A stretch of DNA of 64,000 bases from Blastocladiella emersonii ATCC 22665 (taxonomy: Eukaryota > Fungi > Blastocladiomycota), in assembly GCA_025594325.1 (NCBI GenBank), contig JANHCV010000002.1, forward strand, positions 2,542,001-2,606,000, read 5' to 3'. The stretch's first letter is position 1. Each line of letters starts with the position of its first letter. Below are positions 631 through 19,560 of the stretch, in pieces. The notes under the pieces are model-generated. The model was given only the letters and a program-made list of their open reading frames with translations, ran no database searches and had not been told where the DNA came from. The position numbers were made by a program, and so were the translations under genes.

Positions 631-1997
631 TGTGATCTGACCCAAGTCGCTCAGATTGCGGCGTTGGTGCGTGGCAAGGGAGATGCGACGGATCCAGGCA
701 GTTGATATCGTTCCCAGGAGCCAATTCATTGCATCAAGTGCGAGAGCTGGGCATCGAGCTCCGCGTTGTCCCCGCGGTCTCGCCCAGGGAGCGCGCCAGG
801 AGTGCTCCACGACGCGTCGCGCCACACTCGCTGGCCAGCGAGCGGGCTGGAGATCACCCGCGCCGGTTAACGGTGGAATGGATTTCTCGTTTTTGGCACC
901 ACGTCGGGTCAGCGGTGGACGCGAGGTTTATCACCGCGTGAGGCGCCGCCCGCTTTCCCACTGCCGACCACCACGAAGCGAATGGAAGCACAGTCTAGAC
1001 CACGACGTACAACTTGATGCAACGGGTGTTTACCGCTGATTTGAACGAGCCTTGGGCGCCACGAGTGAGTCTTCGAGTACGCGACGCCACTGCAGTCAAC
1101 CGTACGCCGCCGCGGGGTTGCTTACGGCCGCCTCCACCTCGCAGGAAGCGGATCGGTTGCCTGAATCCTAAACGAAAGATGCAGGTTGAGCCGGATGACT
1201 TTGATAAATACGAGGCGTGCCGAGCGACGCTGTGGGCCGATCGGGAGAGCCTCGCGTTTTTCAACCGTTGACGCTGCTGTATGTGCTCCTCCGCTTCAAC
1301 TGTCCGAGTGACAGGAGACGCTGATGACCCACGCGTTTGGCGGGTAGGACCCGAGCGGCTCACACGATGTGCACGGCAAGCAAAGCCACACAGGATGCGA
1401 CAGGCAACCGAACAGCTTTCGATTGCCTGCATGTTCTCCTGTCGCCCTCGCTGATGTCGACCTGATCTGTACACCGCGTATGCGGCTTTACGCCCGTCCT
1501 GTTAACGAGCTTTCCTAGTGGAGGGTCTCCGCGTCGCACAAGACAAGCAACAATGTGCGTGTGCTCGTGGGTTTCTGCGCGACACAGAGTGTTACACAAT
1601 TGCGTTACCGAGAAGAAACGCTTTGGCTGCAGCTCAACTCTCACCCACCTTCCTGCACCGCGCTGTGTAGGCCGCACTCGCTCGGGCGCCGTGAAATGAC
1701 CGCGTCGCCCGCGCGAGTGCGGCCCTCTGTACAATCTCATGGTCGCAGCGCGGTGCACGCTGGTTGCGGTGGGAGCTTTGGGCGCGGGGCGGCGTTTGTC
1801 GATTGCGTGCTCCTACCATGATTTGGAATATAGAAAGCAGGGTACTCGGAGCGGTACTCGAGGAGATCGGTGCGCGCGTCTGCAGCAGCAGCCAAAGACG
1901 CGTCGCGCCACTCACGTTCTGCTTCCTCGCACGAATTTCGAGAAACTCGCCGCGAAAACAACTCAACAACTCACTACATAAGGTTCAAAACTACATC

Positions 1998-4900
1998 TCA
2001 CATGGCCCACGGAAGCAGGCCCTCCATCTTGACCGTCTCGCCCTCGGGCGTGCGCCGCTCGCTGAGGTGGACGCGCGCGAGCGACCCGTCGCCCGCGGGC
2101 CGCAGCTGCATGACGGCGACATACCCCTCGCGGTGCGCGAGCTTCTGGATCTCGTTGTTCGGCCCGCCCATGGTCGCGCGGATCGCCGCGCGGTCGTCGG
2201 CGTAAAGGTGCCAGAACGCCTCGTCGTACACCGCCATGACGATCACGCGGAACGCGGGCGCCGTCTTGCCGTCGACGAGCGACTTGATCGTGTCGATGAG
2301 CGACGTGCGCCACACGGTGCTCGTCAGCGTGCGGTGCGTCGGGTCAGCGGCGCCGTCGTGGTGGATCTGCCACGCGTCGCGCACCCGCTCGTGCGTGTCG
2401 AACAGCCAGTGCTGGACCGCCGGCTGGTGCTGCGCGTCGGGCCCGTTGCCGCCGCTGACAATATCAATGGCCACGACGTGCAGCCCGCGCCACACGGACC
2501 GCGTCGCGTCGACCTGGTTCTTGACGTCGACAATCGCGATATCGTTGACGGCGACCACCACGTCGCCCTGCTTGCGCGCCTTCTCGCTGAGCCCCTGCGA
2601 CAGCACGCGCAGCTTGTACCGCTTCGGGCACTCGAGCGCGCAGTGGTTGGGCAGGTCGGTCGACTCCATTTCCGCGTCGCACATGGGGCAGCTGACGCGG
2701 TGGAACTTGCACTCGTGCTGCAGGTGGTGCTGCACCGACCACCGCTTGACCGACGCCTCGCACCCGGCGCGCGCGTTGGGACACGGCCAGTCAAAGTCGA
2801 GCTGCTTGCACGGCGGGTGCTTGGCCGTCCCGACCACGAGGTGCTCCATGAGCCGCCCGAGCGGCATGTCGGGGGAGCCGCACCGCATCGGGCACGGCAC
2901 GACGACGGCGTCCGAGGCGCCCGCGAGCGACAAGGTCTTCATCGTCGTGGTCGTGTTGGGCGTCTGGGAACCGCACGCGTGTGAGTTGGCGGGTTTGCAA
3001 TCGCCGCCGACGAGGTGGGCGAGCCAGTCCCGGTACGACGCAATGGCGCCCGAGCTGCACCGCGTGCACATCGCCTGCTTCTTGGCGGCACCCAAGAGCA
3101 GCGACGACTCGCATGCGTGCAGCCAGTGGTCGACGAGGTCCGCCGAGGCCACGAGCGCGGTGCACGACCCGACGCCGCACGGCACCCTGCGCGCCGGGCA
3201 GCCCAGTACCAGGTGCTTGACCAGATGGCTGCGCGGGAACGTGGCCGCGCACTGGTCGCACCGCGCGGGCGCGTGGCGCTCGGGGCAGGCGAGCCGCATG
3301 TGGCGTCCGAGCTTGCCGCGCGACTCGCGCGCCGGGCAGAACCAGCACGCGACCGTCGCGTACGCGCACTCAACGACCGCGTGGTGCGTCGTCATGAGGA
3401 GCGGGACCGCGTCGGACTGGGAGGCGGGGCAGACGGCCGTGTGCGGGCACGGCACGCGCGCGTCGATGCACTCGGTCACGGCGTGGATGTGGTGCGTGCC
3501 GGGCGCGTACGCGATGTCGCAGTTTGGGTGAGGGCATCGCACGATGCCGAGCGAGCACTTGAACGCGACGTGCAGCGCCTCCTCGTGCGGCGCGTCAAAC
3601 GAGTGGCCGCACAGGTTGCGGCACGGCAGGCCGACGGTGGCCGGCTCGCGGACGAGCAGCGAGCCCGCGACGAGGCGGTGGACGGCCTCGAGGTACAGCG
3701 GGTGCGACGGGTCCATGCCGAGCCGCGCCAGCTCCGACGACAGCGCGCGCGCCGGGTCGCTGCCGAGATCGAGGTCGTGGCCCACGATCGCGTCCGGGTC
3801 GACGGGCCGCGCGAGCGGCGGCAGCAGAATGTGGTGCGCGACGAGGTGCTCAAACTCGTCCATCTTGACGTACTCGGGCGCGGGACAGCCCTCGATCGAA
3901 CAGGCGACGCGGTACGCGGGGCAGTCTTGGTTCAGGTGGCGGACGAGCCCGCCGACCACGTTCTCGGAACAGTGCGGGCAGCGCACGACCTTGGTCGCGC
4001 ACTCGAGCAACAGGTGTGCGTTGAGGTCCTTGATCGGCAGCACGGCGTCGCACCCGGGCGAGGGGCACGGTGCTGTCACCGTCGTCGCGTTCGGGCAGGC
4101 CGTGAGCAGGTGCGTGAACATGGCGCTGGTCGCGCCGCCCACCACCAACACGCCGCAGCCGGGCGTCGGGCAGCGGCGCTCAAAGTTGGCGCACGTGTCG
4201 AGGTGCGCGCCAAAGGCGCCCCACGACTTGATCAGCGCGCCGCAGCCGTGCGGGCACGGCACGGTAGCGTCCTCGGCGATCGTGACGGCGGAGGGGTCGC
4301 ACACCGCGAGCAGCGCGGGCGAGCCGTTGGCGTCGCAGCAGCCACCACCGGGCAGCACGATTTTGGGTGTCGTCCCGTCGGGCCCGTGGTGCAGCGAAAG
4401 GGCGCCGCACGCGCTGCCCGTCGCGGGCGCGAGCAGGGCCTTGGCGCAGGTGCGGAGGTGCGCGACGAGGGCCTCGTCGTCGGGCAGCGACTCGTCGCAG
4501 AACCGGCACCGCCCGCTGTACACGTTGGGCAGGATGCGCGTCTTGAACAGCTGGCGGACACACCCGGGCACGTTGCACGGCACCGACGGCTTGCACTCGC
4601 GGCGGTGCGCCTCCTCGTTCTGTCGGAGGTAGATGCCGGTGCACCGCGCGCACGTCGTCCAGCACGCCTCGCGCGAGTGTCGCAGCAGCCGCGCCTCGAC
4701 CGTGTCACCGTCCACGTACGGCACCATCTCGGCGCACCGCGTGCACTTGATGTCGCGGCGGGCGCACTCGTACGTCTCGTGGACCTCGCGGTCGCGCGCG
4801 ACGACCGACGCGCGGCAGAAGGTGCACGCGACAATGTTCTTGGCGCACACGTGCTGCAGGTGCGCGGCCATGGCGCCCGCGGGCACCAGCGCGCCGCACC

Positions 4901-7900
4901 CGGCCTTGGCGCACTTTTCGACGGACTTAACGACGGCGGGGCAGTCGACCTTGAGGTGGAAATTGACGTCGAGCACCTCGGTCGCGCAGTGCGGGCACGC
5001 CGTGCGCGTGCGCTCGTCGAGCTTGGCCATCTCCTTGCACCCGCTCGCGCGGTGCGAGTCCACGGCGTCGCGCGCGACCATGCCGTCGCACGCCACGCAC
5101 CGCACGAGCGCCTTGGGGCACACGGCCGAGTGCGCGTCGACCGTCGGGTCGGCACTCACGACGGCCTGGAAGCACGCGGGGCACCGCGTCGTGGGCGGGG
5201 CGCTGGCCGGCGGCGCGGGCGGCGCGCTCGCCATGGCGTCGGTCGCCTCCTGCAGCTCCTTGCGCAGCTCGGCCGCCGCGTCCTGCTCTTTCGCGGAGGC
5301 GCTGTTCGGGAGCATGGGGATGCGCGAGCCCGGCGGCGTCTGCACCTTGGGCGGCTCGGGCTCCGTCGAGCACTCGCCGTCGACCCACGGGTAGTACTGG
5401 CCGACCGATGCCGCCGCGTCCGTCTTCTCGCTGTAGTCGGCAGCGAGCAGCGTCACGAGCACGTCGGCGAGGACCCGCAGGAAATTGCCGCTGGTCGACA
5501 CCTTGAGCCCAAACTTGAACTCGGTGCCCAGAATCACGGCGTGCACGTTGAGGTACGCCTGCGCGCCCGCGTCGCCGCTCGCCGCGTCGACCTGGATGCC
5601 GCCCCCGAAATGGATCGAGTGCACGTCGATGAGCGCGGCCGTGAGCTTGGCGAGGACCGACGTGACGAAGCTGATGGCCTTGCCCGCAAGGTCCACGACA
5701 AACGACACGGCGCTCAGGAGCGCGCTGCCGAGCGCGTAGAAGAACCCAATGCTCGAGTTGCGGCGCTTCTCGTCCAGCTTGTCCTTGGCGGCCTTGAGCG
5801 CCGCCTTGCTCGTGTCCACGAACCCCCTGCACGCGTCGCCCAGAATCTGGAACAGGCACTGCACGAGGCCGGCCGACCCGAGCGTGCCGTCGGCGTTCTT
5901 GGTCGCGCCGAACAGGCGCAGGTTGAGCCCGATCTCGGACGGCACCATGAGCAGCCGCGCCGGCGGGAACGCCTCCTCGACCATGGGCTGCACCGCGGGC
6001 GGGACGAGCGACTGGAACCCGAGCACGAAAAAGCCCGACAGGCAGATGGCGGACTGCGCGCCCGACAGCATGATGGTGGCGGCGAGCGTGAACCGCGTGC
6101 GGCCCGTCTTGGGGTGCCGCTTGAGCTGCGCGCGGCACTCGACGGCGAGCTTGACGAACAGGTCGAGGTGGATGTAGGCGGCGAAATCAAACTCGAGCAG
6201 GCCCTTGGCCGTGTCGAGCTCGAGCGTGCACTTCATGGCCGCGGCGAGGTCGTGGCTACTGCCCGCGAGCACGAGGCGCCCGCCGAGCCACTTGACGGCC
6301 GACAGCGTCGCGTCGAAATGGACGAGCGCCGTGGGCAGCGACGCGAGCGACACCGCAGACTTCTTGGGATCGAGACCCGTCGCAATGGCGCTGCCCTCGA
6401 TCTTGGCCTCCATCCCGAAAAACGACAGCTCGCACCGCGCGGCAATCGCCATGCTGCCCGCCTCGAGCGCCTTGTTGTCGATGAGGTACTGGCGCATGCT
6501 GCCCTTGTCCGAAGACGTGCTGCCGCTGCTCATGTCGGGCAGCGCGCTCACGTCGGCGTGGGCCGTCGGGTCGAGCTTGAAGAAAAGCTCGAGGTGCTTG
6601 ATGCCCGGCAGCACCCGCTCGACCCACGCGAGCCCGCGCAGGAGCGCGCTGTTCTCGCCGACAAACGGCGCGAGCAGGCCCGTGAACGACACGTCCTTGG
6701 CAACCGAATAAAAGAACTTGAGCGGGGGCAGCTTGAGCGACACAGCGCCCAGGACGGGGTACGACATGGCCGGGTCGTGGATCTTGAGCCCGCCCGAGAA
6801 GCACACGCTCGGCTTGGCCTCGCCCAGCTCGATGCCGAGGCGCAGGCCCTTGAGGTAGATGCTGCGCAGCGCGTCGGCGAGGTCGCCCAGCGCGATCCAC
6901 GCCTTGGCCGCCGCGGGCTCGAGCGAAATGTCGGCCTTGAGCACGAGCGGCGAGACGCCCAGCGTGGCGGCGAGCGAGCCCGCGAACCGCGCCCACGGCT
7001 TGCCGTCCACGCGGATCGTCATGGCGACGGCCACGTCAATGTCGGTCCGCGTCAGCGTGAGCTTGTTGGCGTCAAACTTGATGCCCTCCCCCAAATCGAT
7101 GGGCGGCAGGAACCCGTGCACGGCAAACACCTCGCCGAGCTGCAGCACGCCCTGGACGGACTTGCCGTCGAGGCCGAGCGGCTGCCACAGCGCGCCCTCG
7201 AGCCGCAGGCGCAGGCTCGACTGCACGTTGAAGCCCTTGCCCGTGTACTTGCCGCCGCCCTTGCCCGCCTTGGCGAGCTCCTCGGCCGTGACGAGCGGCG
7301 GGTCCTGCTTGGCCGACCACTTGGGCAGCTGCTTGAGGATGATGTCCGTCACGTCATCGTCGTCGATGTCGACCTTTTTGGCGGCGTCCTTTTTCTCGAC
7401 GGCGGTGGTTGCGGTCGTGGTGGCGGGATCGCTCGGCAACGACAATGGCTCCTTGGCCGAGTCGGCGGAGGCGGCGCTGCTCGCGGTCTCGATCCAGTTG
7501 TAGCGCATGTCGAGCCACACGAGGTCCAGCTGGACGGGCGACATGTCGAGCACGTCCTTGACCACGTCGGGGAGCGACGCGTTGACCAGGTCGGTGAGCG
7601 CCGTGGACCCGTCGGCGGCCGCCTCGGGGAGGCACGCGACGCGTACGCCGAGCTTGCCGTCCTGGACGCGGCACATGACGGCGACGGGCACCTCGAGGTG
7701 CGAGAGCGTGCACCCGACGACGAACGTGAAGGTCGACTTGGACAACTTCGCGACATCCTCGGCGGCGGCGGTGCCGCGGTCAAAGGCGAGGCCGATCGTG
7801 TAGATGCGGACCGAGAGCAGCTCGGACAGCAGCTTCTCGACCGACGCGTCAGCCGTGAAACTCGAGTCAATGGCCTGGATGAGCATGAGCGCCGTGAGCG

Positions 7901-10900
7901 GCTTGGGCTTGAGCGCGCGGCCGAGGATCAGCACGTTGCCCGCGGTCGTGACGCTGCCGGCGAGCGCAATCTCCTGCTCCTCGAGCGCGCGGCTGTTGAA
8001 CAGCGCGCCCGGGTTGTTGACGAGGATGCCGAACCGCGTTGGCGCGCGCTTGGGCGCAACGGTAGCGACGGCCGTCGGGGTAGACGCGGGACCGGCCGAC
8101 TTGAGCTGGATGTTGACGCACAGCGCAATGGCGGCGCCGTTGAGACGCGGGTGCAGCGCGCCACTCGACTCGGCGAGCGAGACCTGGATGAGGACCTCGC
8201 CGGCACCGGCCTCGAACAGCTTCTCGAGTCCGGGCGGCAGCGACGGCTTCTTGGCGAGCGCGACAACGGCGGCGGCGGCGGCAGCTGCCGTGTCGTCAGT
8301 CTTGTCGGCGTCGTTCTTGGCGACTACGAGCTGCTGCTGCTGCGCCGCGTCGGCGGCGGCAGTCTCCTCCTCCTTCTTGCCGCCCTCGTCCGTCTGCTCG
8401 TCAGCCGATGACTCGCCCTCCTTTTTGCCGTCAGCATCGTCGTCGTCAGTGGATCGGTCGAGAACCGCGAGGTACTTTTTCTGCATGGGCTGCTTCATGG
8501 CGAGGATGCGGAGGTTGGCCTTGGCGCCGAGGCCGTCGAGGACGGGCGCGATCTTGACCAGCTTGGCGTGCGACACGACGGCCTGCCCGCGGAGCGCCCA
8601 GTCGTCGAGCGAGCCCTGCACGCGGAACATGGTGGCGGCGACCGAGAACTTGATGTCATCGAGCAGCGTCAGCTCGCCCTCGGCCTGGTACACGTCCACG
8701 GGGATCTTGGCGGGCGCGGCCGAGTCGGCGCCGGCGGCCGTCTGCTTCTGCTCCTTGGCCGACGCGGTGCTGGCCGACGACTCAGCTGCCGACGTGGTCG
8801 CCGCAGACTTGGACTTGGACTTGGACTCGGCAGGATTCGCGGCGGCGTCAGCGGCGCCCTCCTTCTCAGGACCTGCAGCGGCAGCGGCGTCGGGGTCCTT
8901 GACCTCGTCGAGCTGCTTGTACGTGAGCCGGACCTTGTCGAGGGACAGCTGCACGCTGTCGCCGATCCCGAACAGCACCGCGAGGTCGACGTTGCTGATC
9001 TCGGCGACGAACGCGTTGCCCGAGGTCGGCGAGCGGAGCACGAGCATCGAGAAGGCGGCCTTCTTACCCGTGTCGTCGTCCCACTTGGTCGCGAGGTCCG
9101 AGGTGGCGGCGTAGGTGATGGCGAGCAGCGACGAGCGCGGCGGGAGGTCCTCGGCCTCGTCGTCATCGGCCTTGGCGGGCGCATCAAGCTGCCCCGCCGC
9201 AGCCGGACGACGGGCGATCGCGTTGGAGCGCGGGCGCGTGACATTGTCGATCGAGCGGTCCACGGCGTTGGCGCGTGGGCGCGTCAATGTCGCAGTCGCG
9301 GTCTCGTTGGCGGCGGGCGAGGACGAGGATGAAGAGGTCGAGGAGGTCGTGGGCGGCACCGAGGAGCTGCGCGGGCGGCGTGCCACCGATTTCTGCAACG
9401 AGGGGTCCGACGACGGTTCGGCGGCGGGCGCGATGCTCGGCGCGTCCGTGTCGCTGCCGGTCTGCTTGTCAGCCTCGCCGACCTGCTTCTCGGCGGCAGC
9501 CCCGGCCTCCTGCTCCTGCTTCTTCTTCTTCTTGGCCTCCTGGTCGTCGTCATGGCTGGCGATCAGCTTGAGCAGGCCCTCGGTCGAGATCGGGTCGGTC
9601 GCGTCCTTGATAATGAAGGGCTTCTTGGGGTCGGCGAGCTTGAACCACGACAGGTACCGGACCACGAGCTGCGCCTTGCCCTTGGGCAGGAGGAACTGCA
9701 GCCACTCGGGCGACACCTCGTACAGGTTGGCGCCCGCAACACCGAACGACACGTCGAGCATGCGGCGCGGGACCCAGCACGCGCGCGCGGCGACAGCAAC
9801 CTGGTGCGGATCAGCCGCGACCGTGGTCTTCTTCTCAATACTCGTCTCCTTGGTCTCGGTCAGCGAGCTGATGGCGGTGGTGGTCGCCGAGGTGGTCGAG
9901 GTCACGACGTGCGGCGCAGCGGCAGCGACAGCGTCGGCCCACGCGAGCTCAAGCATGCCGTTGAACTCGGCGACCGTCGGCCCGTCGAGCGGGACCGCGA
10001 TGGTCGCGTTGGCGGCGCCGTGCAGCGACATGAGCGGGTGCCCGTCCTGCAGCGCGATCGTGTGGTCGAACTCGACCTCGGCGCGGCCGGCACCGCGGAC
10101 CTTCCACAGGCTCTCCTCCTGCTTCTCGGCCGCCGTCGAGCTTGCGGCCGCGTCGACCGTCTTGGCCAGATTGGGCTCGGGCGACGCCGCAGCCGAATTT
10201 TCGGCGGTCTCCTTCTGCTTGTTGGACGCCAGGCGGACGACGTCGATCTCGAGGCTCGCGGCCGTGAGGCGTAGGACCTCGCTGCTTGAGGGCACGGCGA
10301 GGTTGACGGAGCCAAAGCGCTTGAGTGCGCGCGCGACGGCCTTGCTGCCCTTGGCCTTGAGGGACAGCGACCAGTGGTGGTCCTCGCCCTCGTCGGGCGC
10401 GTAGGCCAGCATCACCGTGGCGGCGTGGACCGCGCGCGTCTTGGGTTTCTCCTCCGACTGCTGCTCCGTGTCCGACGTCTTGGCCACCGCAGCGGGCGAT
10501 GACGAGGCGAGGGACTCGTCGTTGGCGGGCGGGAGCGAATCGGGCGGCTTGGCGAGCGAGGGCGACTCGGGCTTCTCGTTGTTGGTGGACTCGAGCGCGG
10601 GCGCAGAGGTGGGCGACGAGGGCGACTTGGCGTCGCCGTCGCCGTCGTCCGAGTCGGGCTCGGCGATCTTGAGCGTCAGCTCGGCGGCGGCGAGGCTCGG
10701 CTTGAAGCTCTTGAACACGAAGCGCGCTGAGCCGCTGCACTCGTCGAGGCCGAACGTCGCGGGCGCGTCGTCGCCGCCGCTGCCGTCTTTCTTCGTCTCG
10801 GCCGACGGCAACGACGCAGATGCCGTTGCGTTCGGCTCGGCGGCGTCGACAGAGGGTGGCGCAGGCGCGGGAGCACTCGGCTCGCCAGCGGCCGACGGCG

Positions 10901-13230
10901 GCGTGGGCACGGGAGCGTTGGGCTCGACGGCGGCCGGCCCTACGGCCTTCTCGTTGATGCGCTTGCCGTCCGACTTGCCCTGGTCCTTCGGATCCGAGCC
11001 GGCGGCCGAGGAGGTCTCGCGGTTCTTGCCCTTGTCCTCGTCGGCCTTGGGCGGCGGCGCGACCTTGAACTCAATGAGCAGCTGCGTCTTCTCGCGGACG
11101 GCGAGGACGGCGGCGACCGAGTCGAGCGAGAGCGGGCCCAGCGGGCAGCCCGGGAAGAAGAGGATCGGGTTGGACTTGCCAGGGAGGTATTCGAGTTCGA
11201 TCGAGTACGGCGCCCACTTCTGCTTGGGCTTCTCCTTCTTCTTGTCTTCGGCGCCTGCGTCGGCGTCTGCCACAGCGGACGCAGCGGCGGGCGCAGCGGC
11301 GGTGGCGGCCTCAGACTCGGCGGGCGCAGACGCGCTCTTGCCCTCGCCAGCCCGCGAGCCAGGCTCGGCGGCGGCCGCAGGGACCGGCAGCGAGGGGTCG
11401 AGCTCACCCAAAACGCGAGCATCGGCGGACGAGGAGCGCTGCTTGCGCGGCGCGGCCATGGCCGGGTCAGCGTTCGAGGACGACGCGGTGACCTTGGATT
11501 CGGCGGGCTCGCGCACGGCGCCGGTAGCCGACGGTGTGGCGGGAGCAGATGCGGCCGAAGGCGCTGCGTCGGCGGACCGACCGGCGGGCGCCGTCACGAT
11601 GGCCTTGGCGCGCGGGCGTGTTGTCGACGAGCTGGTGGGCGTGGTCTCGGGCTGCTGGCCGGCGGTCAACGACTCAGTCTGCTTCCCGCTCTTCTCGCCG
11701 TCGGCCGAGTCGCCACTCTTCTCCTTCGTCTCGACGGGGACCTTGACGAGCATGATCTTGGCCTTGAACGTGTGGCCCTCGAGGAAGCCGAGGCCGTCGG
11801 GCGCTGACGAGACCGTGTAGGTGGCGACGATGCCAGCGCGCGCAATGTCCTTGCGCTCGAGCGGCTCGAGCTCCTTGTCCTTGTCGTCGGCGCCCTTGCT
11901 GCCCGACTTGTCCGTCTTGGCGGCAGGCTTTGCGCCCAGCGCATCTGTGTCCGCCGTCGCGTCGCCGTCCGAGATGCCCGCGTCCGACGGCGCGTCGTCG
12001 CGGTCCGAGTCGCGCGCGTCAGACTCCGCGTTGCCCGCTTCGGCCGCGGCGGCCGCAGCAGCAGCAGGGAGGACAGCTTCGCCGGCCGGCGGCTCCTTGC
12101 CGTTGTCGTCGGACTTGGACTCGAGCTCCTTGCCGTTGGCGTCCTCGGAGTCGGCCTTCTGCTTGTCGGCGGCGACGGCCGACTCGTCCTTCTTCTCGGC
12201 GGCATCATCGTCATCTTCATCATCATCGTCGCCACCCTCGTCGTCCTTTGTCTCCTCATCGGTAGGCGGGCCGGCGACGAGCACGTTGACGACGTCGAGC
12301 ACGCCGCGCAGGTGGTACTTGCCAATCATCTCATCGAGCTTGGTGCGCGGGACGATCTTGTCGAGGCGCTTACCGGCAGGCTCGGACGGTGAGAAGGGCT
12401 GGTGCCACTTGATCTTGGCGAAGCGCGTGGGCGCGACGGGCTTCTTGTCGGTCTACACACACGAGAAACGAGTGAGCGGATGGACAAACGAGCGTGCCGT
12501 ATCGGCGCAGGCGTACCTTGGCGTCCTTGGACGCGTCGCTCGAGTCTTTGGCGGCGCTGGCTGCGTCGGCGGAGCGAGAACTGGCCGCATCGGACACGGC
12601 GGCGGTGGCGGTCTTATTGTTGGTCTACACACGCGAGTACAGAGTGAGTGGACAGACCATGGATCGAGTGCTGCGCGTGATAGTGTACCTTGGCGTGCTT
12701 GGACCCGTCGGTCGAGTCCTTGGCGGCGCTGGTCGCGTCGGCGGGGCCGGGGTTGGCCGCGGCCGAGGCGACGGCGGCGGTAGGAGCGGGCTCGGGAACA
12801 GGAGCAGTGGTTGAGGCCGACTAGTTGGCGCAATGGAGCGAGTGAGCACGCAGTGACCTACGTCAGGACGTGAGCCGACGCGTACCGGCTTCGCGACAGG
12901 AGAGCGGCTCGGAGCGCCATCGTGCGAGTTGACGGATGTCGCCGATACAGGATCGCGTCGAGGAGGTGCGAGTGCAGGTGCAGGTGCAGGGGTCGAGGGA
13001 GCAGCAGCGCTCACGGGTGGAGCAGCGCGAGCCGCCGACGGGGCGGCGGGAGCAGGCGCGACGGCAAAGTCGACGCCCGAGTCGGCGCGAGCGTGTATCG
13101 GTGCATGGGTCGATTCATGGTGGCGATTGCGTGGAGTGCCGGGTGCCGATGAGGTCGGCGAGGGAGGGCCTGAAGGCGGAGCAGCCGCGGCGGCCGAAGC
13201 GCGTGCCGCCGGAGACGCGTCACGGTCCAT
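1998..13230 (-). CDS. Giant (~3,680 aa) protein: low-complexity N-terminus, long beta-rich region, hydrophobic helical segment, ~23 TRAF-type Zn fingers, C-terminal ILEI/PANDER-like domain
   Basis: The 3443-aa ORF extends upstream through three phase-0 GT..AG introns (12453-12516, 12625-12688, 12821-12885) to ATG 13230 (MDRDASPAAR...). Exon lengths 345/132/108/10455 are all multiples of 3. Repeated C-x2-4-C...H-x3-4-C units lie at ~2620-5190. C-terminal WRGLHVVAID...FDT...RVIVMAVYDEA...IQKLAHREGY motifs are ILEI-like. Confidence 0.85.
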
Positions 13231-13805
13231 TCCGGGTGGTCGCCCAACTAGGCAAGGCGGGGCGCGTGGGTCAGCCAGACGAGATCGGGGGACGTGCGAG
13301 ACGCGCCGCACGCACAGTTGTTGATGCGAGCGCTGACCGAGGAGCACACGACGGCTGCTTGGACACAGGCGGAGCAACGGCGAGGACGTGAAGCGGCGCG
13401 CCGAGTGGGCCGGATGCGTGGAGACCCGAGAGCCCGCGACGGCGTGAAGAGGTCGGCGAGGACGAGAGAGCGAGCGTGAACGGCGGTCCGTCGAAGCCGA
13501 TCTGACTTCCGCGACTGCGCCATCTCGCCGGCCCGCAGATCCCAGCGCTTCCCTGCTATTGGGTTTCGCTGTTCCCGAGCGCCCCCAAACCCGGCGCCTT
13601 CTCGAACCGCGTGCACATCCGTTGTTCCGCCGAATCCTGTGGCTGGAAGCGGCCACTTTGCCCGAACATACCCTTCGGATTCTCCTCCAGGACCAGCAAG
13701 CCCGTCGCTCAACCTTCGCCGCGCTCCCTCTCCCGTCTCCCCTCCTCGATCGTCCGGTAATCGGCCGCGCGACCCGACCTGCAGCACTCGTCACGCACCA
13801 CTACC

Positions 13806-16190
13806 ATGGCCACCAAGCAGCAGACGCGCCGCGTGCACTCGCCGCTGACCGACACCATCACGACGCTGCAGGACCTCACGTCCGCGCGCGCGTGGCCGTC
13901 GTGGCGCGCCCGCGTCGAGGACATGCTCGCCGCCGACGGGTGCAAGTTCCTCATGCCCGCGCGCGGCACCGATCCCGCCGCCGTGCCGACCGAGGCCCTC
14001 GTCACGCAGCTCGCCGCCCGCCTCAAGTCGCTGCACAAGCTGAGCTCGGACGCCGACGCCCGCGCCGAGGCCCGCGACCTGCAGTTCGCCTACTGCGCGC
14101 TGCTCCGCTCGACGCTCGCCAGCGACTGGTACGCGGTCGTCGCCGACGCCGAGTGCCCGACGGCTCTGATCGCCGCGCTCGAGGCCCACGCCGCCGCCGA
14201 GTCGGCCAAGGCCGCCGCTCTCGCCGCCAAGAACAAGTCGTCGTCGTCGTCGTCGTTGGGCGGCGTCAAGGCCGAGAAGGTCATCCCGCTCATCCTCCAG
14301 GACAAGAACAACGCCTTCAACCACGCCGAGCTGACCCAGCTCGTCGACCAGCTGTGCGGCTCGCTGCTCGACCGCGACGAGGCCGTGCGCGTGCTGCTGC
14401 TCAGCGTGCTCTCGGGCCAGAACGTGCTGCTGCTCGGCCCGCCCGGCACCGCCAAGTCGTACGCCGTCAACGAGACCATGAAGCGCATCGTCACGCCGCG
14501 CCCGCACTTTTCGACCACGCTGCACGCCACCTCGACCGTCGACGACCTGATCGGCCCGATCGACGTGCAGTCGCTGACCACCGTCAGCGTGTCGCAGCGC
14601 AACCTCGGCGGCATGCTCGCCGACACGGAGCTGGCCTTCCTCGACGAGATCTTCAAGGCGTCCAAGGCGACGCTGTCGTGCCTCATGACCATCCTCAACG
14701 AGCGCCGCATCGCCAACGGCTCCACCATGGTCGACACGCCGCTGCACGTGTGCTTCGGCGCGTCCAACGAGGTGCCGCTCGAGGCGTCGCAGGCCGCGCT
14801 CATGGACCGCTTCCCGCTGCGCGTGTTCGTCGACTACGTCAGCCCGACCACGCGGCTCGCGCTGCTCGGCTTCCTCGGTACCGACACGTCGTCGTCGTCG
14901 TCGCCCGTGCTGCGCATCAACCTCGGCGACGTGGCCGACGTCAGCAAGCGCGCGCAGGCGCTCGGCAACGTGCTCGCCGACCCGGCCATGCTCGCGCTGT
15001 TCACGGACCTGCACGAGTACATCAACGGCGCCCTCCTGCGCGAGGCCGAGTACCGCGCCGCCGGTCCTCCTCCCGCCACCGCTGCATCTACTTCAACCAG
15101 CACCGCCTCGACGGGCGTGCGCAAGGGCGGCTCGGCGTGGATGGACTCGCTGTTCGCGGGCGGCAAGTCGGGCGTGTTCGGCGCGCAGTCGCAGCAGACG
15201 TACGGCGGGTGGCTGCTCACGGACCGCGGCATCGTGGTGCTGCTCAAGGTGCTGCGCGTCGTCGTGTTCGCGCACGGCCGCACCAAGGCCAACCCGCTCG
15301 ACGTGTACCCGGTCGTGTACGTGGCGTGGCAGACCAAGGACCAGCACCAGTGCCTCGTGCAGTGGCTCGAGGCCCGCCTCGCCAAGGAGCTCGCCGCGCT
15401 CGCGCAGATCAAGGGCCGCGACGCTGTCGCCGCGACGGTCAAGGCGCACCTGTTCGTGCCCGACGCCGCCAAGCAGCGAATCCTCAACGGGTTCATGGGC
15501 CCCGCTCCCGCCGTCGAGACCAAGCCCGCTCCCGCGCTGGCCCCTGTGGCGCCAGCTGCCGAGCCTGCACCCGCCGTCGAGCAGAAACCCGCGGCCTCCG
15601 AGGTCTCGCTTCGCGTCGTGTCCATGGGCTTCAACGAGCGCACGGGCGAGCAGGGCACGTTCCGCGTCAGCATGGGTAACGCGGCGCCGTTCATCGACAT
15701 TAGCGGTCCGCGCGGCACCAACATGCAGTTCACCGGGCTGCACATCGTATCCATCGACGGGTTCACGGGCGGCCGGCCGACTGGGATTCAGCACTGGCTC
15801 GTCAACACCAACTCGCCCAAGCGCGAGGTGACGCGCCTGCAGTACTACGGCGATTCGGAGCCCGTTCGCTTTGAGCAGAAGACGATCGCCGAGGTCCTCA
15901 ATGACCTGGCGAATCCCGCCAAGGCGCTGGTGGGTCGTGTCGTCGTAATCGGCGTGTTCGACGAGGCGAGCGAGAACCTGGTCGACTTCAGCCGCATCAA
16001 GATCCAGACCGCGTCGGGCCGCGGCCAGCGTTCCCGGATCAGCGACCTTCGCTACCGCTCCGGCTACGCGTGTGCAGTTCAGATGCGGACTGGCGCCGAC
16101 GGGAACCTCACGCGCGTGTCCCTTGGCGAGGAGCTCTCGCCCGCGGGCGAGGTCGCTGAGCTTCAGTGTTCGGCCCTGTTTCCCAACTAG
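13806..16190 (+). CDS. RavA-like MoxR-family AAA+ ATPase with C-terminal ILEI/PANDER-like domain (794 aa, intronless)
   Basis: Motifs: LLDRDEAVRVLLLSVLSGQNVLLLGPPGTAKS (Walker A), LAFLDEIFKA (Walker B), TILNER, GASNEVP, ALMDRFPLRVFVDYV, and lid TDRGIVVLLKVLRVVVFAHGRTKANPLDV...W. All parallel RavA-subfamily motifs. Codon bias is strong and GC3-rich. Confidence 0.9.
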   Translation: MATKQQTRRVHSPLTDTITTLQDLTSARAWPSWRARVEDMLAADGCKFLMPARGTDPAAVPTEALVTQLAARLKSLHKLSSDADARAEARDLQFAYCALLRSTLASDWYAVVADAECPTALIAALEAHAAAESAKAAALAAKNKSSSSSSLGGVKAEKVIPLILQDKNNAFNHAELTQLVDQLCGSLLDRDEAVRVLLLSVLSGQNVLLLGPPGTAKSYAVNETMKRIVTPRPHFSTTLHATSTVDDLIGPIDVQSLTTVSVSQRNLGGMLADTELAFLDEIFKASKATLSCLMTILNERRIANGSTMVDTPLHVCFGASNEVPLEASQAALMDRFPLRVFVDYVSPTTRLALLGFLGTDTSSSSSPVLRINLGDVADVSKRAQALGNVLADPAMLALFTDLHEYINGALLREAEYRAAGPPPATAASTSTSTASTGVRKGGSAWMDSLFAGGKSGVFGAQSQQTYGGWLLTDRGIVVLLKVLRVVVFAHGRTKANPLDVYPVVYVAWQTKDQHQCLVQWLEARLAKELAALAQIKGRDAVAATVKAHLFVPDAAKQRILNGFMGPAPAVETKPAPALAPVAPAAEPAPAVEQKPAASEVSLRVVSMGFNERTGEQGTFRVSMGNAAPFIDISGPRGTNMQFTGLHIVSIDGFTGGRPTGIQHWLVNTNSPKREVTRLQYYGDSEPVRFEQKTIAEVLNDLANPAKALVGRVVVIGVFDEASENLVDFSRIKIQTASGRGQRSRISDLRYRSGYACAVQMRTGADGNLTRVSLGEELSPAGEVAELQCSALFPN

Positions 16191-16611
16191 GTGACTTCCG
16201 AACTGATCAATATAGTACGCTGAGGCCTTTAATAGTCGCAAGAAATCGCACTTCACATCAAGTCCTCAAGCGGATGGCGTCGTGAGAGACGCGTTGCTCA
16301 AACGCACGTGGTGGCACAGCCGAGCGCTGTTCCGCGAGCCGAGCGACCCGCGAGGCGTCGGATGCCTCGCGCATGCTGCTCTCGAAACCGTTGGTTTCAA
16401 CCAACCAAAGTTTCCGTCGCTGCTGCCGGGCAGAGCGATTCATCTACGGGTCAGTCGACGCGTGTGCCGCCCGCCCTCGTTAGACCGGCGATGCTGACAT
16501 TGATTGCACTACGCGTTCTTGAGCGCGTCAAGAGTGCTCAACGTCAGGGCTCGACCAGTTTGGGTTCACACTTAACTCTGTTTATCGAAATGCCACATGA
16601 CCATCGCGCGG

Positions 16612-19560
16612 CTACACATCCTCGGTGCACTCGCGCGCAAGTCGCTGCACCTCCTGGATTCCCACGCCTGCGCCCTCGAGCACGGACTCGACCTGGAACG
16701 CGACGCACCCGGCCTCGAGCCCGACGATCAGGATTGACTCGTCGGGCGAGACCGTGAGCCGCGAGATGAGCCCGCGGCCGACGTTGAGCGCGCCCCACGC
16801 GCCGCGCGGACGGTGGCCCGCGTCCATGTCCTCGGCCGAGTACCGCACGACCTTGCCAACGGGTAGCGGCGGCGCGCCGTCGAGCGCGTTGGGCCCGAAC
16901 CCATACAGCGCCTCGGGCGGGATGGTCGCGCCGTGCGACCACACGTCGTCGACGTCGAGCTTGCGCTTCCAGAGGTAGACGTCGTCGACGAACGGACACT
17001 GATCGCGCACGCGGATCAGCGACGAGGTCGAGGCGGCCAGGATGTCCTGCTGCGTCGGGACCGACTGCCGCGTCGACTTGAGGTCGACCGGGGTGCTGGC
17101 GCTCCGCGACGCGCAGGCGAGCGTTGGGCGGTACGCGTGCAGCAGCGGGATGTCCCAGAACCGGATCACGCCGTCGCGACCCGCCGTTGCGAGCAGGTCG
17201 CTCCCGCGCAACCACACGGCGTCGATGATCCCGACGCTCGTGTCCGCGTGTGCCACGGTGTCGTCTACACGCGAGCGACGCGAACTGTGAGAACACGCGG
17301 CGCGGATGGCGTTTCGGGCGGTCCGAACCCGAGTGCGGCAGAATGCCCAGTGCGCGCGTCTTGTCCGAGACGTCGATGACGACGAGCCGGTTGCTGCACC
17401 CGCCCGCGTACGCGTACCGGCCACACGGACTACACGGCGAGGGTCAGCCATGGTCGCGGAGCGGCCGCGCGTGTCGCGTACCTGAACCCGAGGACGTCGC
17501 AATCGGTCAGCCCGGTCCACCACGCGCACTCGACGACGGGATCTGCGATGCGCCGCGGGCTGAACTTGGTAGCCTCACCGATGGGCGCGAGCTTGACGAA
17601 CCACAGCCGCTGGTCGCCTGAGTTAGCGCCCGTGCGCCTGGCTTTTTCGCGCGGCGCCGTGATGAACGCGGCATACGGGCCGTGCGTGCCGTCGACGGCG
17701 GCCACGTCGACGATGGGGAACGGGTGCGCGATGGAGTGGCGCAGCGGGCCCGCGTCGGTGGGCGTGCGCCACGCCGCGTTGCCCGTCCCGGCGCAGCACA
17801 GCTCATTGATCTGGCGCAGGTCCCACACGATCAGCGCGGCCCACTGCGTGCCCTTGAACGTGTCGCACCCGGCCACGAGCCGGTGCGCGCCCGCGAACGC
17901 GAGCCGGTTGACGGGGCGCCGCTCGGCGTCGAGCAGCGCGAAGGACCGGCGGAAGTCGCCGCGCACGATGCGGGCCAGGTTGAAGACGATGAGGTTGCTA
18001 CATGAATGCGTGCGAGAAGGGCGTCAGTCGGCCGACCCTGAGACCCCGCGCCGCTAGAGAGGCCTACCTGTCCTGGTCGCCGACGGCAATCATCCACGGC
18101 GCCTCAGGCGACTGCGCGATGGCGATCGCAAACTCCGAGTCGCTGAAGGTGGGAAACTCGGGCGGGAGCGGGACGGGCGACCCGTCGTCGATGCGCGACA
18201 CAGCGAAGGTGCCGTTGACGCCGCCCGAGACGACCCAGTCGCGCCACACGACGACGGCGGCGACGGTGAGCGAGCAGCGCGGGGCGAGTGGGTTGGCGCC
18301 CGCGTTCGGGTTCGGGACCGAGTGAAGCTCGCGTTCCATGCGGTACGCGCGCGCCGTGAGATCGACGAAGATCAGGTTGCCCTCGCGGTTCTCCGAGTCG
18401 CCGGGTTTTGCGGCCGCGGCAACGACGAGGAGGCGGCTACACACAGAATCGAAAGTTAGCGCGCGAGTCGAGGGAGCGCTGGGTGGGTACAGGGCGCACT
18501 TGTTGGGCATCACGAGCATCTCCGTATCGCCACTCGTGGTCGGCAGGTTGAAGGCGAAGTTGAGCGACGCGAGCACCTCGCGGTTCATCCACTGCCGCAT
18601 CCCGCGCTGGTTGCCCGTGATCTCGGTGCGGAAGCGAAGATGCAGCCGGTTGATGCCGCCCGCGAGCGCTGCGTTGCCAGCCAGCGGAGCTTCAAATGCC
18701 AGTCTCCGCGGCGCAGGCAAGCTGCTCTCTGGCACCACGACAGCAATGTGTCGCTGCGGCGGCAAACCATTTTCGCCGGGCTTCTCGACGATGAAGGCAC
18801 CGACTGGCGCGCCACCGAGCCGAGCGTAAGCATCGAGCGCCGCTGCGTCGACCACGGGAAGCTCTGGATGCGGCGCCTCGGAGTCGGAATAGGCGGATAA
18901 GGCACCGTTCGTGCCCGCCTGAAGGATCGCGTGGTGGATCATGCGAAGCTGCTCCACGCTAAGCAAGTCGGTAGGCAACGTATTGGTGTGCTGCGGCGCG
19001 GGGTGCCGGTGCCTGCCCACACTCACGAGCTTGCCCGCGTGCAAGTGTCTGCTCCTGCGCACGAACAGGCTCGGGTTGTGACCGACCCCGTGCATGTCCC
19101 ACTTCTTCCAGTGTAACTGGACACGATGAGCGTCGCCGCGCGTGCGGATGGCAGGTCGCGACTTCGTTGGCGGCGGCTTAGGGATCTGCGGGATGAGACC
19201 GGCAACGAGCTCGTCCTCCAGGACCTCCTCGGCTTCACCCCAGTCGCCACTGGTCGTGTCCACATCCATGGCCGAGTCGTCCTCGTCCTCGTCGTCGCCG
19301 TCGCCCGTATCCGAGTCCGAATCCACATCCATGCAAGCGGTGCTCGACGTACGCCGCGCCCGAGGACGTGAGGGCGGCGGCGGAGCACGCTGGGCGTTCG
19401 AGGCGCCGCTCGACATGCTGGACACGCTCGAGACGCCGGAGTTACCCGAGCCGGGTCGGGACTCGGGCGTCGGCGACGACGAGGCGATGGTGATGACCTC
19501 ACGCGCGGGTGGGCGGCCTGCCGCGCCCGCTGCGCCAAGTGGGGCGCGGTTGCAATTCAT
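16612..19560 (-). CDS. WD40-repeat protein with acidic/low-complexity N-terminus (3 introns)
   Basis: ORFs 18064-19560, 17430-17966 and 16612-17529 join via GT..AG introns (first 17998-18067; others near 17430-17480 and 17265-17330). WD-like segments: WVVSGGVNGTFAV, ALIVWDLRQI, FSPCGRYAYAGGCSNRLVVIDV, LLATAGRDGVIRFWDI, ISRLTVSPDESILIVG. Confidence 0.75.

Follow-up and report, generated by a model that had tools for sequence, protein, structure and literature searches.

The divergent gene pair

The stretch of DNA analysed here, referred to as the window (64,000 nucleotides), was assigned by exact protein look-ups to contig JANHCV010000002.1 of Blastocladiella emersonii ATCC 22665, in the assembly GCA_025594325.1, which was produced from PacBio HiFi reads (PMC9730499). 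Near its left end, a gene for a giant zinc-finger protein and a gene for a RavA-like AAA+ ATPase are transcribed divergently, and the proteins that they encode end in related domains. A previous examination of the DNA letters, hereafter the sequence-only reading, had already described this pair; both genes were found at the positions it gave and every peptide string it quoted was present in the translations. Its spacer of 575 bp (13231-13805) was superseded by the public annotation, which sets the two start codons 885 bp apart. The pair is made up as follows.

1998-12329, minus strand: main exon of the giant gene, an open reading frame of 3443 codons plus stop
12330-12920, minus strand: 5′ part of the giant gene as annotated, with short exons and introns, coding for a predicted ~102 amino acids (aa) and placed by a tblastn search with the N-terminus of P0002
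12921-13805, no strand: divergent intergenic spacer of 885 bp between the two start codons (public annotation)
13806-16190, plus strand: RavA/bpMoxR-type AAA+ ATPase A (P0001), 794 aa in a single exon, from its open reading frame, Pfam and RavA structure matches

The public model of the giant (P0002/KAI9188371.1) comprises 3545 aa, the additional ~102 aa being supplied by the short 5′ exons, which extend up to ~12920. These exons are unreliable, since the models built on two identical DNA copies of the gene (copies A and B, see below) disagree by an insertion of 8 aa near the N-terminus. Short internal repeats of 27-45 bp were also seen in this 5′ stretch of giant A (12330-12920) when it was compared with a third pair of the same genome, pair C.

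A shared C-terminal domain with a predicted ILEI/PANDER fold

The last ~200 aa of the giant and of the ATPase were aligned by BLASTP with an E-value of 4e-29 (30% identity and 50% positives over 206 aa), so that the claim of a homologous domain at the end of both genes was borne out, and the resemblance of the two sequences is far beyond chance. A tblastn search of the whole window found no third copy. The two domains are placed as follows.

2001-2621, minus strand: predicted C-terminal ILEI/PANDER-fold domain of the giant, P0002 aa 3339-3545, with the full Arg-Asp-Arg triad (BLASTP, profile searches, hhalign, alignment)
15591-16187, plus strand: predicted ILEI/PANDER-fold head of ATPase A, aa 596-794, outside the inverted repeat described below, with the first triad Arg replaced by Thr (BLASTP, hhalign, AlphaFold2, structure alignment)

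The sequence-only reading had named this domain ILEI-like and had pointed to the Pfam family PF15711. By direct comparison with Pfam, neither domain of the window matched PF15711 at E<=1 (gathering score 27 bits), and the best score within the blastoclad family, that of P0003, was 18 bits against this threshold of 27. The assignment was reached by other routes. An exhaustive HMMER search of a library of 1.84 billion proteins, using a profile of the two domains only, returned just 11 proteins: the two queries themselves, three other B. emersonii proteins (P0003, of 409 aa with two tandem copies; the ATPase paralogue P0004; and P0005, a 93-aa fragment), a 3214-aa giant of Allomyces javanicus (P0009), and five bacterial or metagenomic proteins with library-wide E-values of 4e-11 to 4e-4. 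Pfam resolves each of those five into 5-6 ILEI repeats in tandem, with E-values from 1e-73 to 1e-138. When eight blastoclad domains were compared by hhalign with 23 ILEI repeats, a match of 97.8% probability was obtained (E 7e-13); its 119 columns begin at the first strand and extend as far as the R-x-S-Y/W motif.

Structure prediction pointed the same way. AlphaFold2, run on the combined alignment, produced a model with a predicted local distance difference test score (pLDDT) of 93.2 and a predicted template modelling score (pTM) of 0.90, and the fold match is to be read with the caveat that this alignment contained ILEI repeats; from the two-sequence alignment the prediction was unusable (pLDDT 48). 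Searched against the PDB with Foldseek, the model had the POMGnT1 stem or FAM3A/B/C as all of its best 17 matches, with TMEM2 at rank 25, and a structure search of AFDB-SwissProt gave the same picture. VIA-align superimposed 146 of 152 residues on the POMGnT1 stem (Z 17.6, root-mean-square deviation 2.2 Å), followed by FAM3A/B/C (Z 13-14), TMEM2 (9.8) and the next unrelated structure (3.6). Because profile, hhalign, AlphaFold2, Foldseek and VIA-align agree, the ILEI assignment is correct, and the shared domain is predicted with confidence to adopt the ILEI/PANDER fold. Less sensitive comparisons contributed little: the two-sequence profile against PDB sequences gave only a chance match to eIF5A; the eight-sequence profile gave weak matches to POMGnT1, TMEM2 and FAM3 (E 0.01-0.3) mixed with designed armadillo repeats; a word-based homologue search with the ATPase head matched only itself; and an atlas feature search of the head gave nothing above noise.

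The likeness to the POMGnT1 stem, FAM3A-D and the CEMIP/TMEM2 GG domain covers the three-layer fold over the whole domain and the motifs S-x-G, (R)G-L-H/N-V, FDT, V-x-DEA and L-x-x-R-x-x-Y/W. The blastoclad domain differs from these in an insert of ~25 aa after the FDT motif and in its setting, being carried by a TRAF-finger giant without a signal peptide or by an AAA+ ATPase instead of a secreted or lumenal protein. In a phylogenetic tree, the blastoclad family stood apart from the bacterial ILEI repeats (100/100), and the three ATPase heads known from B. emersonii formed one clade (94/96 support) apart from the domains of the giants. As a separate observation, the standalone protein with two tandem ILEI domains, P0003, is encoded on B. 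emersonii contig 12 at ~2.7 kb from a gene with a weak match to URGCP-type large GTPases (L009:690-11230).

The sugar-binding triad

POMGnT1 binds beta-linked GlcNAc through Arg129, Asp179 and Arg207, and GlcNAc is also bound by FAM3C and FAM3A (PMC9802357). These three residues were mapped on the blastoclad domains by HMMER alignment to chain 5ggj_A with one consistent offset, and fall on the Arg in RGLH, the Asp in DEA and the Arg in Y-R-x-G-Y. The alignment revealed the full triad in giants A and B, in the Allomyces protein P0009 and in the second domain of P0003 (P0003_C), and the same three motifs were read by eye in the sequence of giant C. The first Arg is replaced in every ATPase head, by Thr in A, Ser in B and Val in C, and head B also has Glu in place of the Asp; in the first domain of P0003 (P0003_N) this Arg is replaced by Cys. 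With the first Arg missing from the ATPase heads and all three residues present in the giants, heads and giant domains are, as judged from their residues, not equivalent at the known sugar site. The proposal that both proteins target the same glycan is thereby weakened, as all three ATPase heads lack the equivalent of Arg129 in the POMGnT1 site (PMC9802357).

Domain architecture of the ATPase and of the giant

The remaining domains recognised in the two proteins are listed here.

14328-14864, plus strand: AAA+ core of ATPase A, bpMoxR at aa 175-353 and AAA_5 at aa 206-336 (Pfam)
15213-15365, plus strand: AAA lid (AAA_lid_8) at aa 470-520 (Pfam, 24.3 bits when the sub-sequence was searched, cut-off 22.8)
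2640-5183, minus strand: array of ~20 CCHC TRAF/XAF1-type zinc fingers in the giant, P0002 aa ~2485-3316 (Pfam, regular expression)

The description of the ATPase as RavA-like was upheld by Pfam matches above threshold to bpMoxR (PF20030, 132.8 bits against a cut-off of 27, E 1e-38) and AAA_5 (PF07728, 70.4 bits, E 2e-19), and by matches to chains of E. coli RavA from crystal and cryo-EM structures, 3nbx and 6q7l (E 5e-27), limited to aa 176-350. All motifs inspected were intact: Walker A (GPPGTAKS, aa 211), Walker B (FLDEI, 278), sensor-1 (GASNE, 318) and MDRF (333). The LARA domain of RavA was not found in ATPase A, whose aa 340-600 gave a Pfam match to AAA_lid_8 only, and the N-terminal 175 aa matched no Pfam family. 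Within the sequence encoding this ATPase body, contigs derived from the reads of runs X1 and X2 differ from the assembly at full depth by G>C at window position 14576 and C>G at 14579, which could reflect a paralogue-derived contig or two polishing errors of the assembly.

The giant is a TRAF-finger protein, as had been claimed: zf-TRAF (PF02176) scored 46.6 bits against a cut-off of 27 in Pfam, with seven stretches matched in addition to CEP104_ZnF, and a regular expression detected 20 CCHC fingers between aa 2485 and 3316. The atlas feature search gave weak matches of these fingers to those of TRAFD1/XAF1, and nothing above noise for the central region. By Pfam, the first ~2400 aa match no family, and neither RING, MATH/TRAF-C and vWA domains nor a recognisable effector domain were found in the protein. 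The label of a copia Gag-like N-terminus received no support from Pfam, which found nothing in the first 2300 aa. No segment resembling a signal peptide was seen at either N-terminus by crude hydropathy, with the 5′ exons of the giant being predicted only, and the number of strongly hydrophobic 19-mers was one in the giant and zero in the ATPase; the giant is probably cytosolic. Its sole strongly hydrophobic 19-mer, IGFFYALGSALLSAVSFVV (P0002 aa 2296-2314, window ~5693-5749, minus strand), in an otherwise soluble-looking protein, might form a buried helix or anchor the giant in a membrane.

An inverted repeat with identical bodies and different heads

Most of the pair lies within one arm of a long inverted repeat, the inner edge of which falls inside the ATPase gene.

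1627-15539, no strand: one arm of a 13.9-kb inverted repeat, with its twin ~53 kb to the right, starting ~4.4 kb past the end of the window (blastn, depth)
15483-15590, plus strand: Pro/Ala-rich linker of ATPase A, inside which the repeat stops at 15539, codon ~578 (blastn, alignment)

Compared by blastn, the two arms are 99.885% identical over 13,914 bp and are separated by a unique spacer of ~53 kb. They differ at 13 mismatch positions and by two indels; just two of the differences lie in the core of the repeat, given as 1998-15460 (differences at 7217 and 15461), the others being clustered at both edges, and the unique flanks are different. The twin arm, on the same contig, carries a giant of 3553 aa (P0012) head-to-head with an 831-aa ATPase (P0014). 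P0012 differs from P0002 by one amino-acid change and by the 8-aa difference between gene models, which lies on DNA that is identical in the repeat. The edge of the repeat falls at ATPase codon ~578, in the Pro/Ala linker. As a result, the bodies of ATPases A and B are the same and their heads differ: the two proteins are identical from aa 1 to 576 and only 36% identical in the heads that follow.

That the second copy, and with it the pattern of same body and different head, is an artefact of the HiFi assembly might be argued from the length of the arm, which is close to the mean HiFi fragment length of ~10.5-13.7 kb (PMC9730499), and from the 53-kb spacer, whose orientation is perhaps beyond the resolution of single reads; it is nevertheless very improbable and was rejected on depth and junction evidence. 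In contigs derived from three DNA runs, which come from the same sample as the assembly, depth falls from 254 to 129.5 exactly at 15539/15540, a two-fold step; positions 15500-16700 are covered by one contig of A type, and from a loose end at 15534 the sequence runs on into the B-type linker, so that both types of junction are seen. The differences between the arms and their distinct flanks also speak against an artefact. Both repeat junctions are real.

Further copies in B. emersonii and the divergence of the heads

A third, older pair (pair C) was found on contig 6, where a giant of 3700 aa (P0075, 69% identical in the compared region) stands head-to-head with ATPase C. The latter is 88-89% identical to ATPase A in the N-terminal region and body and 38% identical in the head; among ATPases A, B and C, the heads are 36-39% identical to one another. 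ATPase C presents a degenerate Walker A motif (GPPSMTKS) followed by a frameshift, and giant C looks intact. ATPase C also has a near-identical copy that stands alone, P0004 (99% identity in the head). The gene models of both copies of ATPase C run across many introns into a DUF707 segment (L002:10001-14836 and L008:4147-9269), and probably bridge a frameshifted pseudogene and the adjoining DUF707 gene. Another fragment on contig 6, P0023 (H9P43_005410, L007:10001-12551), corresponds to the ATPase lid region at 66-82% identity to A and lies in one gene with a weak Helitron_like_N match, which suggests that pieces of the ATPase were captured or dispersed by a Helitron-like element.

By a rough Nei-Gojobori estimate, the synonymous (dS) and nonsynonymous (dN) divergences are 0.21 and 0.08 in the ATPase body between A and C, 0.44 and 0.29 in the ILEI domains of the giants, and, among the ATPase heads, 0.7-0.8 and 0.6. 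Because dS is 0.21 in the body and 0.7-0.8 in the heads, the heads would be older than the homogenisation of the rest, or exempt from it. The pattern may mean that giant and ATPase body evolved in concert while distinct heads were retained; the values are saturated and GC-biased, and are not to be pressed too far. In all three heads, the reading frame and the fold-defining residues are intact. A conserved bidirectional promoter was not found between pairs A and C, whose spacers are alike in short patches only.

Gene order in Allomyces

In Allomyces javanicus, on contig JADHYU010000308.1, a MoxR ATPase 36% identical to A (P0015) stands head-to-head, at 1.1 kb, with a gene of 3874 aa. The latter is a homologue of the B. 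emersonii giant and of P0009, with which it shares ~31% over ~1700 aa. The C-terminus of P0015 is a coiled coil and not an ILEI domain, and no C-terminal domain common to P0015 and the adjoining giant was found in the readable part, the last ~900 aa of the giant lying outside the locus. Among the neighbours recorded at the four pair loci (A, B and C in B. emersonii, and the one in A. javanicus), there was neither a vWA gene nor another conserved third gene, a cryptic vWA being possible. Since the Allomyces pair is head-to-head and yet neither P0015 nor the second Allomyces MoxR protein, P0016, carries an ILEI domain, the adjacency of giant and MoxR genes predates the split between Allomyces and Blastocladiella, with an old ILEI domain in the giant, and the ILEI head of the ATPase is an acquisition of Blastocladiella. 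The gene for P0016 is flanked by two genes of the Ifi-6-16 family and is head-to-head with an uncharacterised 572-aa gene (L006:3252-4061, 10901-11491).

A candidate two-protein module

The locus as a whole can be read as a Blastocladiales-specific two-protein module, in which the ILEI head of the ATPase directs the motor either to the giant or to a ligand of the giant; in our judgement, the chances that this reading is right are about even. The ATPase would be a remodelling enzyme of the RavA/MoxR type, transcribed divergently from a giant scaffold that combines a conserved central region at P0002 aa ~1700-2480, ~20 TRAF-type fingers and a C-terminal ILEI/PANDER domain and that is probably cytosolic. 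In Blastocladiella, the ATPase has gained a paralogous ILEI/PANDER domain behind a flexible Pro/Ala linker, and this head could act as a targeting device that brings the hexameric motor to its giant partner, either by direct pairing of ILEI domains or by binding, beside the ILEI domain of the giant, to a GlcNAc-type ligand shared by both. Once there, the motor could assemble the scaffold or remodel it.

The analogies for such targeting come from three directions. RavA binds its cargo LdcI through the dedicated LARA domain, and FAM3C forms a domain-swapped dimer. In prokaryotic MoxR-centred systems, one adaptor domain (EAD) is found on a core component and on another protein, and homotypic coupling has been proposed (PMC7159879). 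By analogy with these, the head would most likely target the motor to the giant or its ligand, and it is plausible, with partial support from synteny, that giant and ATPase act together with the head as coupling element. A functional two-gene module is the best reading because the head-to-head arrangement is kept across two genera and through two duplications in a genome with few duplicates: duplicated genes are otherwise scarce in B. emersonii (BUSCO duplicates 1.2%; PMC9730499), and head-to-head pairs occur at three of its loci, the near-identical A and B and the more distant C, as well as in A. javanicus. The two-gene unit proposed by the sequence-only reading therefore finds its support in this recurrence and loses some of it in Allomyces, where the ATPases are devoid of the shared domain; likewise, the synteny expected from it was found for one giant/MoxR pair of A. 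javanicus and not for P0009 and P0016.

Several findings weigh against a coupled module. If the ancestral pairing was functional, the absence of an ILEI head from the Allomyces ATPases indicates that the shared domain was not needed for it. No giant lies next to P0016, whose C-terminus is different again, and no ATPase next to P0009, which ends in an ILEI domain. The ILEI domains of giants A and B are identical, and the heads of the neighbouring ATPases are only 36% identical, unlike what tight docking would produce by co-evolution. The decay of ATPase C beside an intact giant C implies that a giant can persist without a working neighbour ATPase. Finally, dN/dS in the heads is ~0.8-0.9, which could mean relaxed constraint, and this ratio was treated as unreliable given the saturated dS and the extreme GC bias, overall and at third codon positions.

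Alternatively, the two genes might be neighbours by ancestry only, the ATPase having taken a copy of the last domain of the giant by local duplication or exon shuffling, with the proteins acting independently and the heads drifting under relaxed constraint. The restriction of the ATPase head to Blastocladiella, its dN/dS ratio, the decayed ATPase C next to its intact giant, the intergenic region not conserved between pairs A and C, and the unpaired members in Allomyces are all in keeping with this explanation, which we hold to be unlikely all the same. Allomyces and Blastocladiella share the head-to-head arrangement, which also survived two rounds of duplication, all three heads preserve an intact frame and the residues that define the fold, and the heads stay distinct while their surroundings are homogenised.

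The sequence-only reading had gone further and suggested a cytosolic surveillance or immune-like module, a possible but speculative idea that rests on pattern. In its full form, a conflict system would consist of a constant MoxR chassis with interchangeable, fast-diverging ILEI sensor heads for ligands (e.g., foreign or damaged GlcNAc-type glycans or proteins); once activated, these heads would use the TRAF-finger giant as a scaffold for signalling or effector functions. It would fit the constant body and variable heads, the TRAF/XAF1-type fingers of the giant, and the several copies, pseudogenised copies and Helitron-associated fragment, which are typical of families with fast turnover; the vicinity of the double-ILEI P0003 to the URGCP-like GTPase and the definition of the bpMoxR subfamily in prokaryotic conflict systems (PMC7159879) also agree with it. 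We consider it quite improbable, however, since no effector domain is recognised in the giant, the heads number three only and give no evidence of positive selection (saturated dS, dN/dS below 1), their sugar site, instead of being intact with variation around it, is short of one contact residue, and the family is known from two genera only. A more specific version must be counted a long shot: fungal cytosolic surveillance in which the ILEI heads of a constant MoxR motor would be kept different by selection while gene conversion in the inverted repeat homogenises the rest, with the motor engaging the TRAF-finger scaffold upon ligand recognition.

Relation to known systems

The known kinds at this locus are MoxR ATPase systems and ILEI-fold domains; what is new is their combination, together with an unusual modular evolution. 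ATPase A resembles RavA in its AAA+ core, in its bpMoxR/AAA_5/AAA_lid_8 architecture and in having a dedicated non-ATPase domain available for partner binding. It differs from RavA in the absence of LARA and of a neighbouring ViaA-like vWA gene at the loci examined, in an additional N-terminal region of 170 aa without a family match, in the position of its ILEI head at the C-terminus behind a Pro/Ala linker, and in its eukaryotic host. The giant resembles TRAF, TRAFD1 and XAF1 proteins in its CCHC TRAF-type fingers above the Pfam threshold; unlike them, it has ~20 fingers in a row, without RING, MATH or a coiled-coil TRAF domain, embedded in a protein of 3545 aa whose first 2400 aa have no family match. 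With the EAD systems (PMC7159879), the B. emersonii pairs have in common that the same domain occurs on both proteins, in all three pairs, although not in Allomyces. Those systems are prokaryotic and include vWA and other core components, their EADs being unrelated small domains on vWA (VMAP) proteins (PMC7159879), whereas here the shared domain sits on the NTPase itself and no effector domain is recognised. That paper does not mention ILEI, FAM3 or Blastocladiomycota, and a full-text literature search for ILEI together with MoxR returned nothing relevant and no published description of the pairing.

The characterised ILEI/PANDER proteins act outside the cytosol, as in the case of the cytokine-like FAM3 proteins, the POMGnT1 stem and the CEMIP/TMEM2 hyaluronidases, and the eukaryotic roles of MoxR/RavA ATPases are almost unknown. 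If an AAA+ motor and a TRAF-finger giant devoid of a signal peptide indeed carry this fold, ILEI biology would extend to intracellular recognition, and MoxR/RavA ATPases would gain a concrete candidate partner other than a vWA protein. Should the surveillance reading be true, an immune-like module would have arisen from a fold so far known, in its characterised members, from secreted or lumenal lectin-like proteins. The identical bodies and different heads in the 13.9-kb inverted repeat show neatly, in a natural setting, how heads can be exchanged or retained as modules during concerted evolution. As B. emersonii is under development as a model organism, these predictions are testable.

A short segment downstream of the giant genes

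A segment of 155 bp just downstream of the stop codon of giant A (window 1627-1781; L004:21140-21294) is 85% identical to L003:22479-22631. In copy B, the match to this segment sits ~1.2 kb further downstream.

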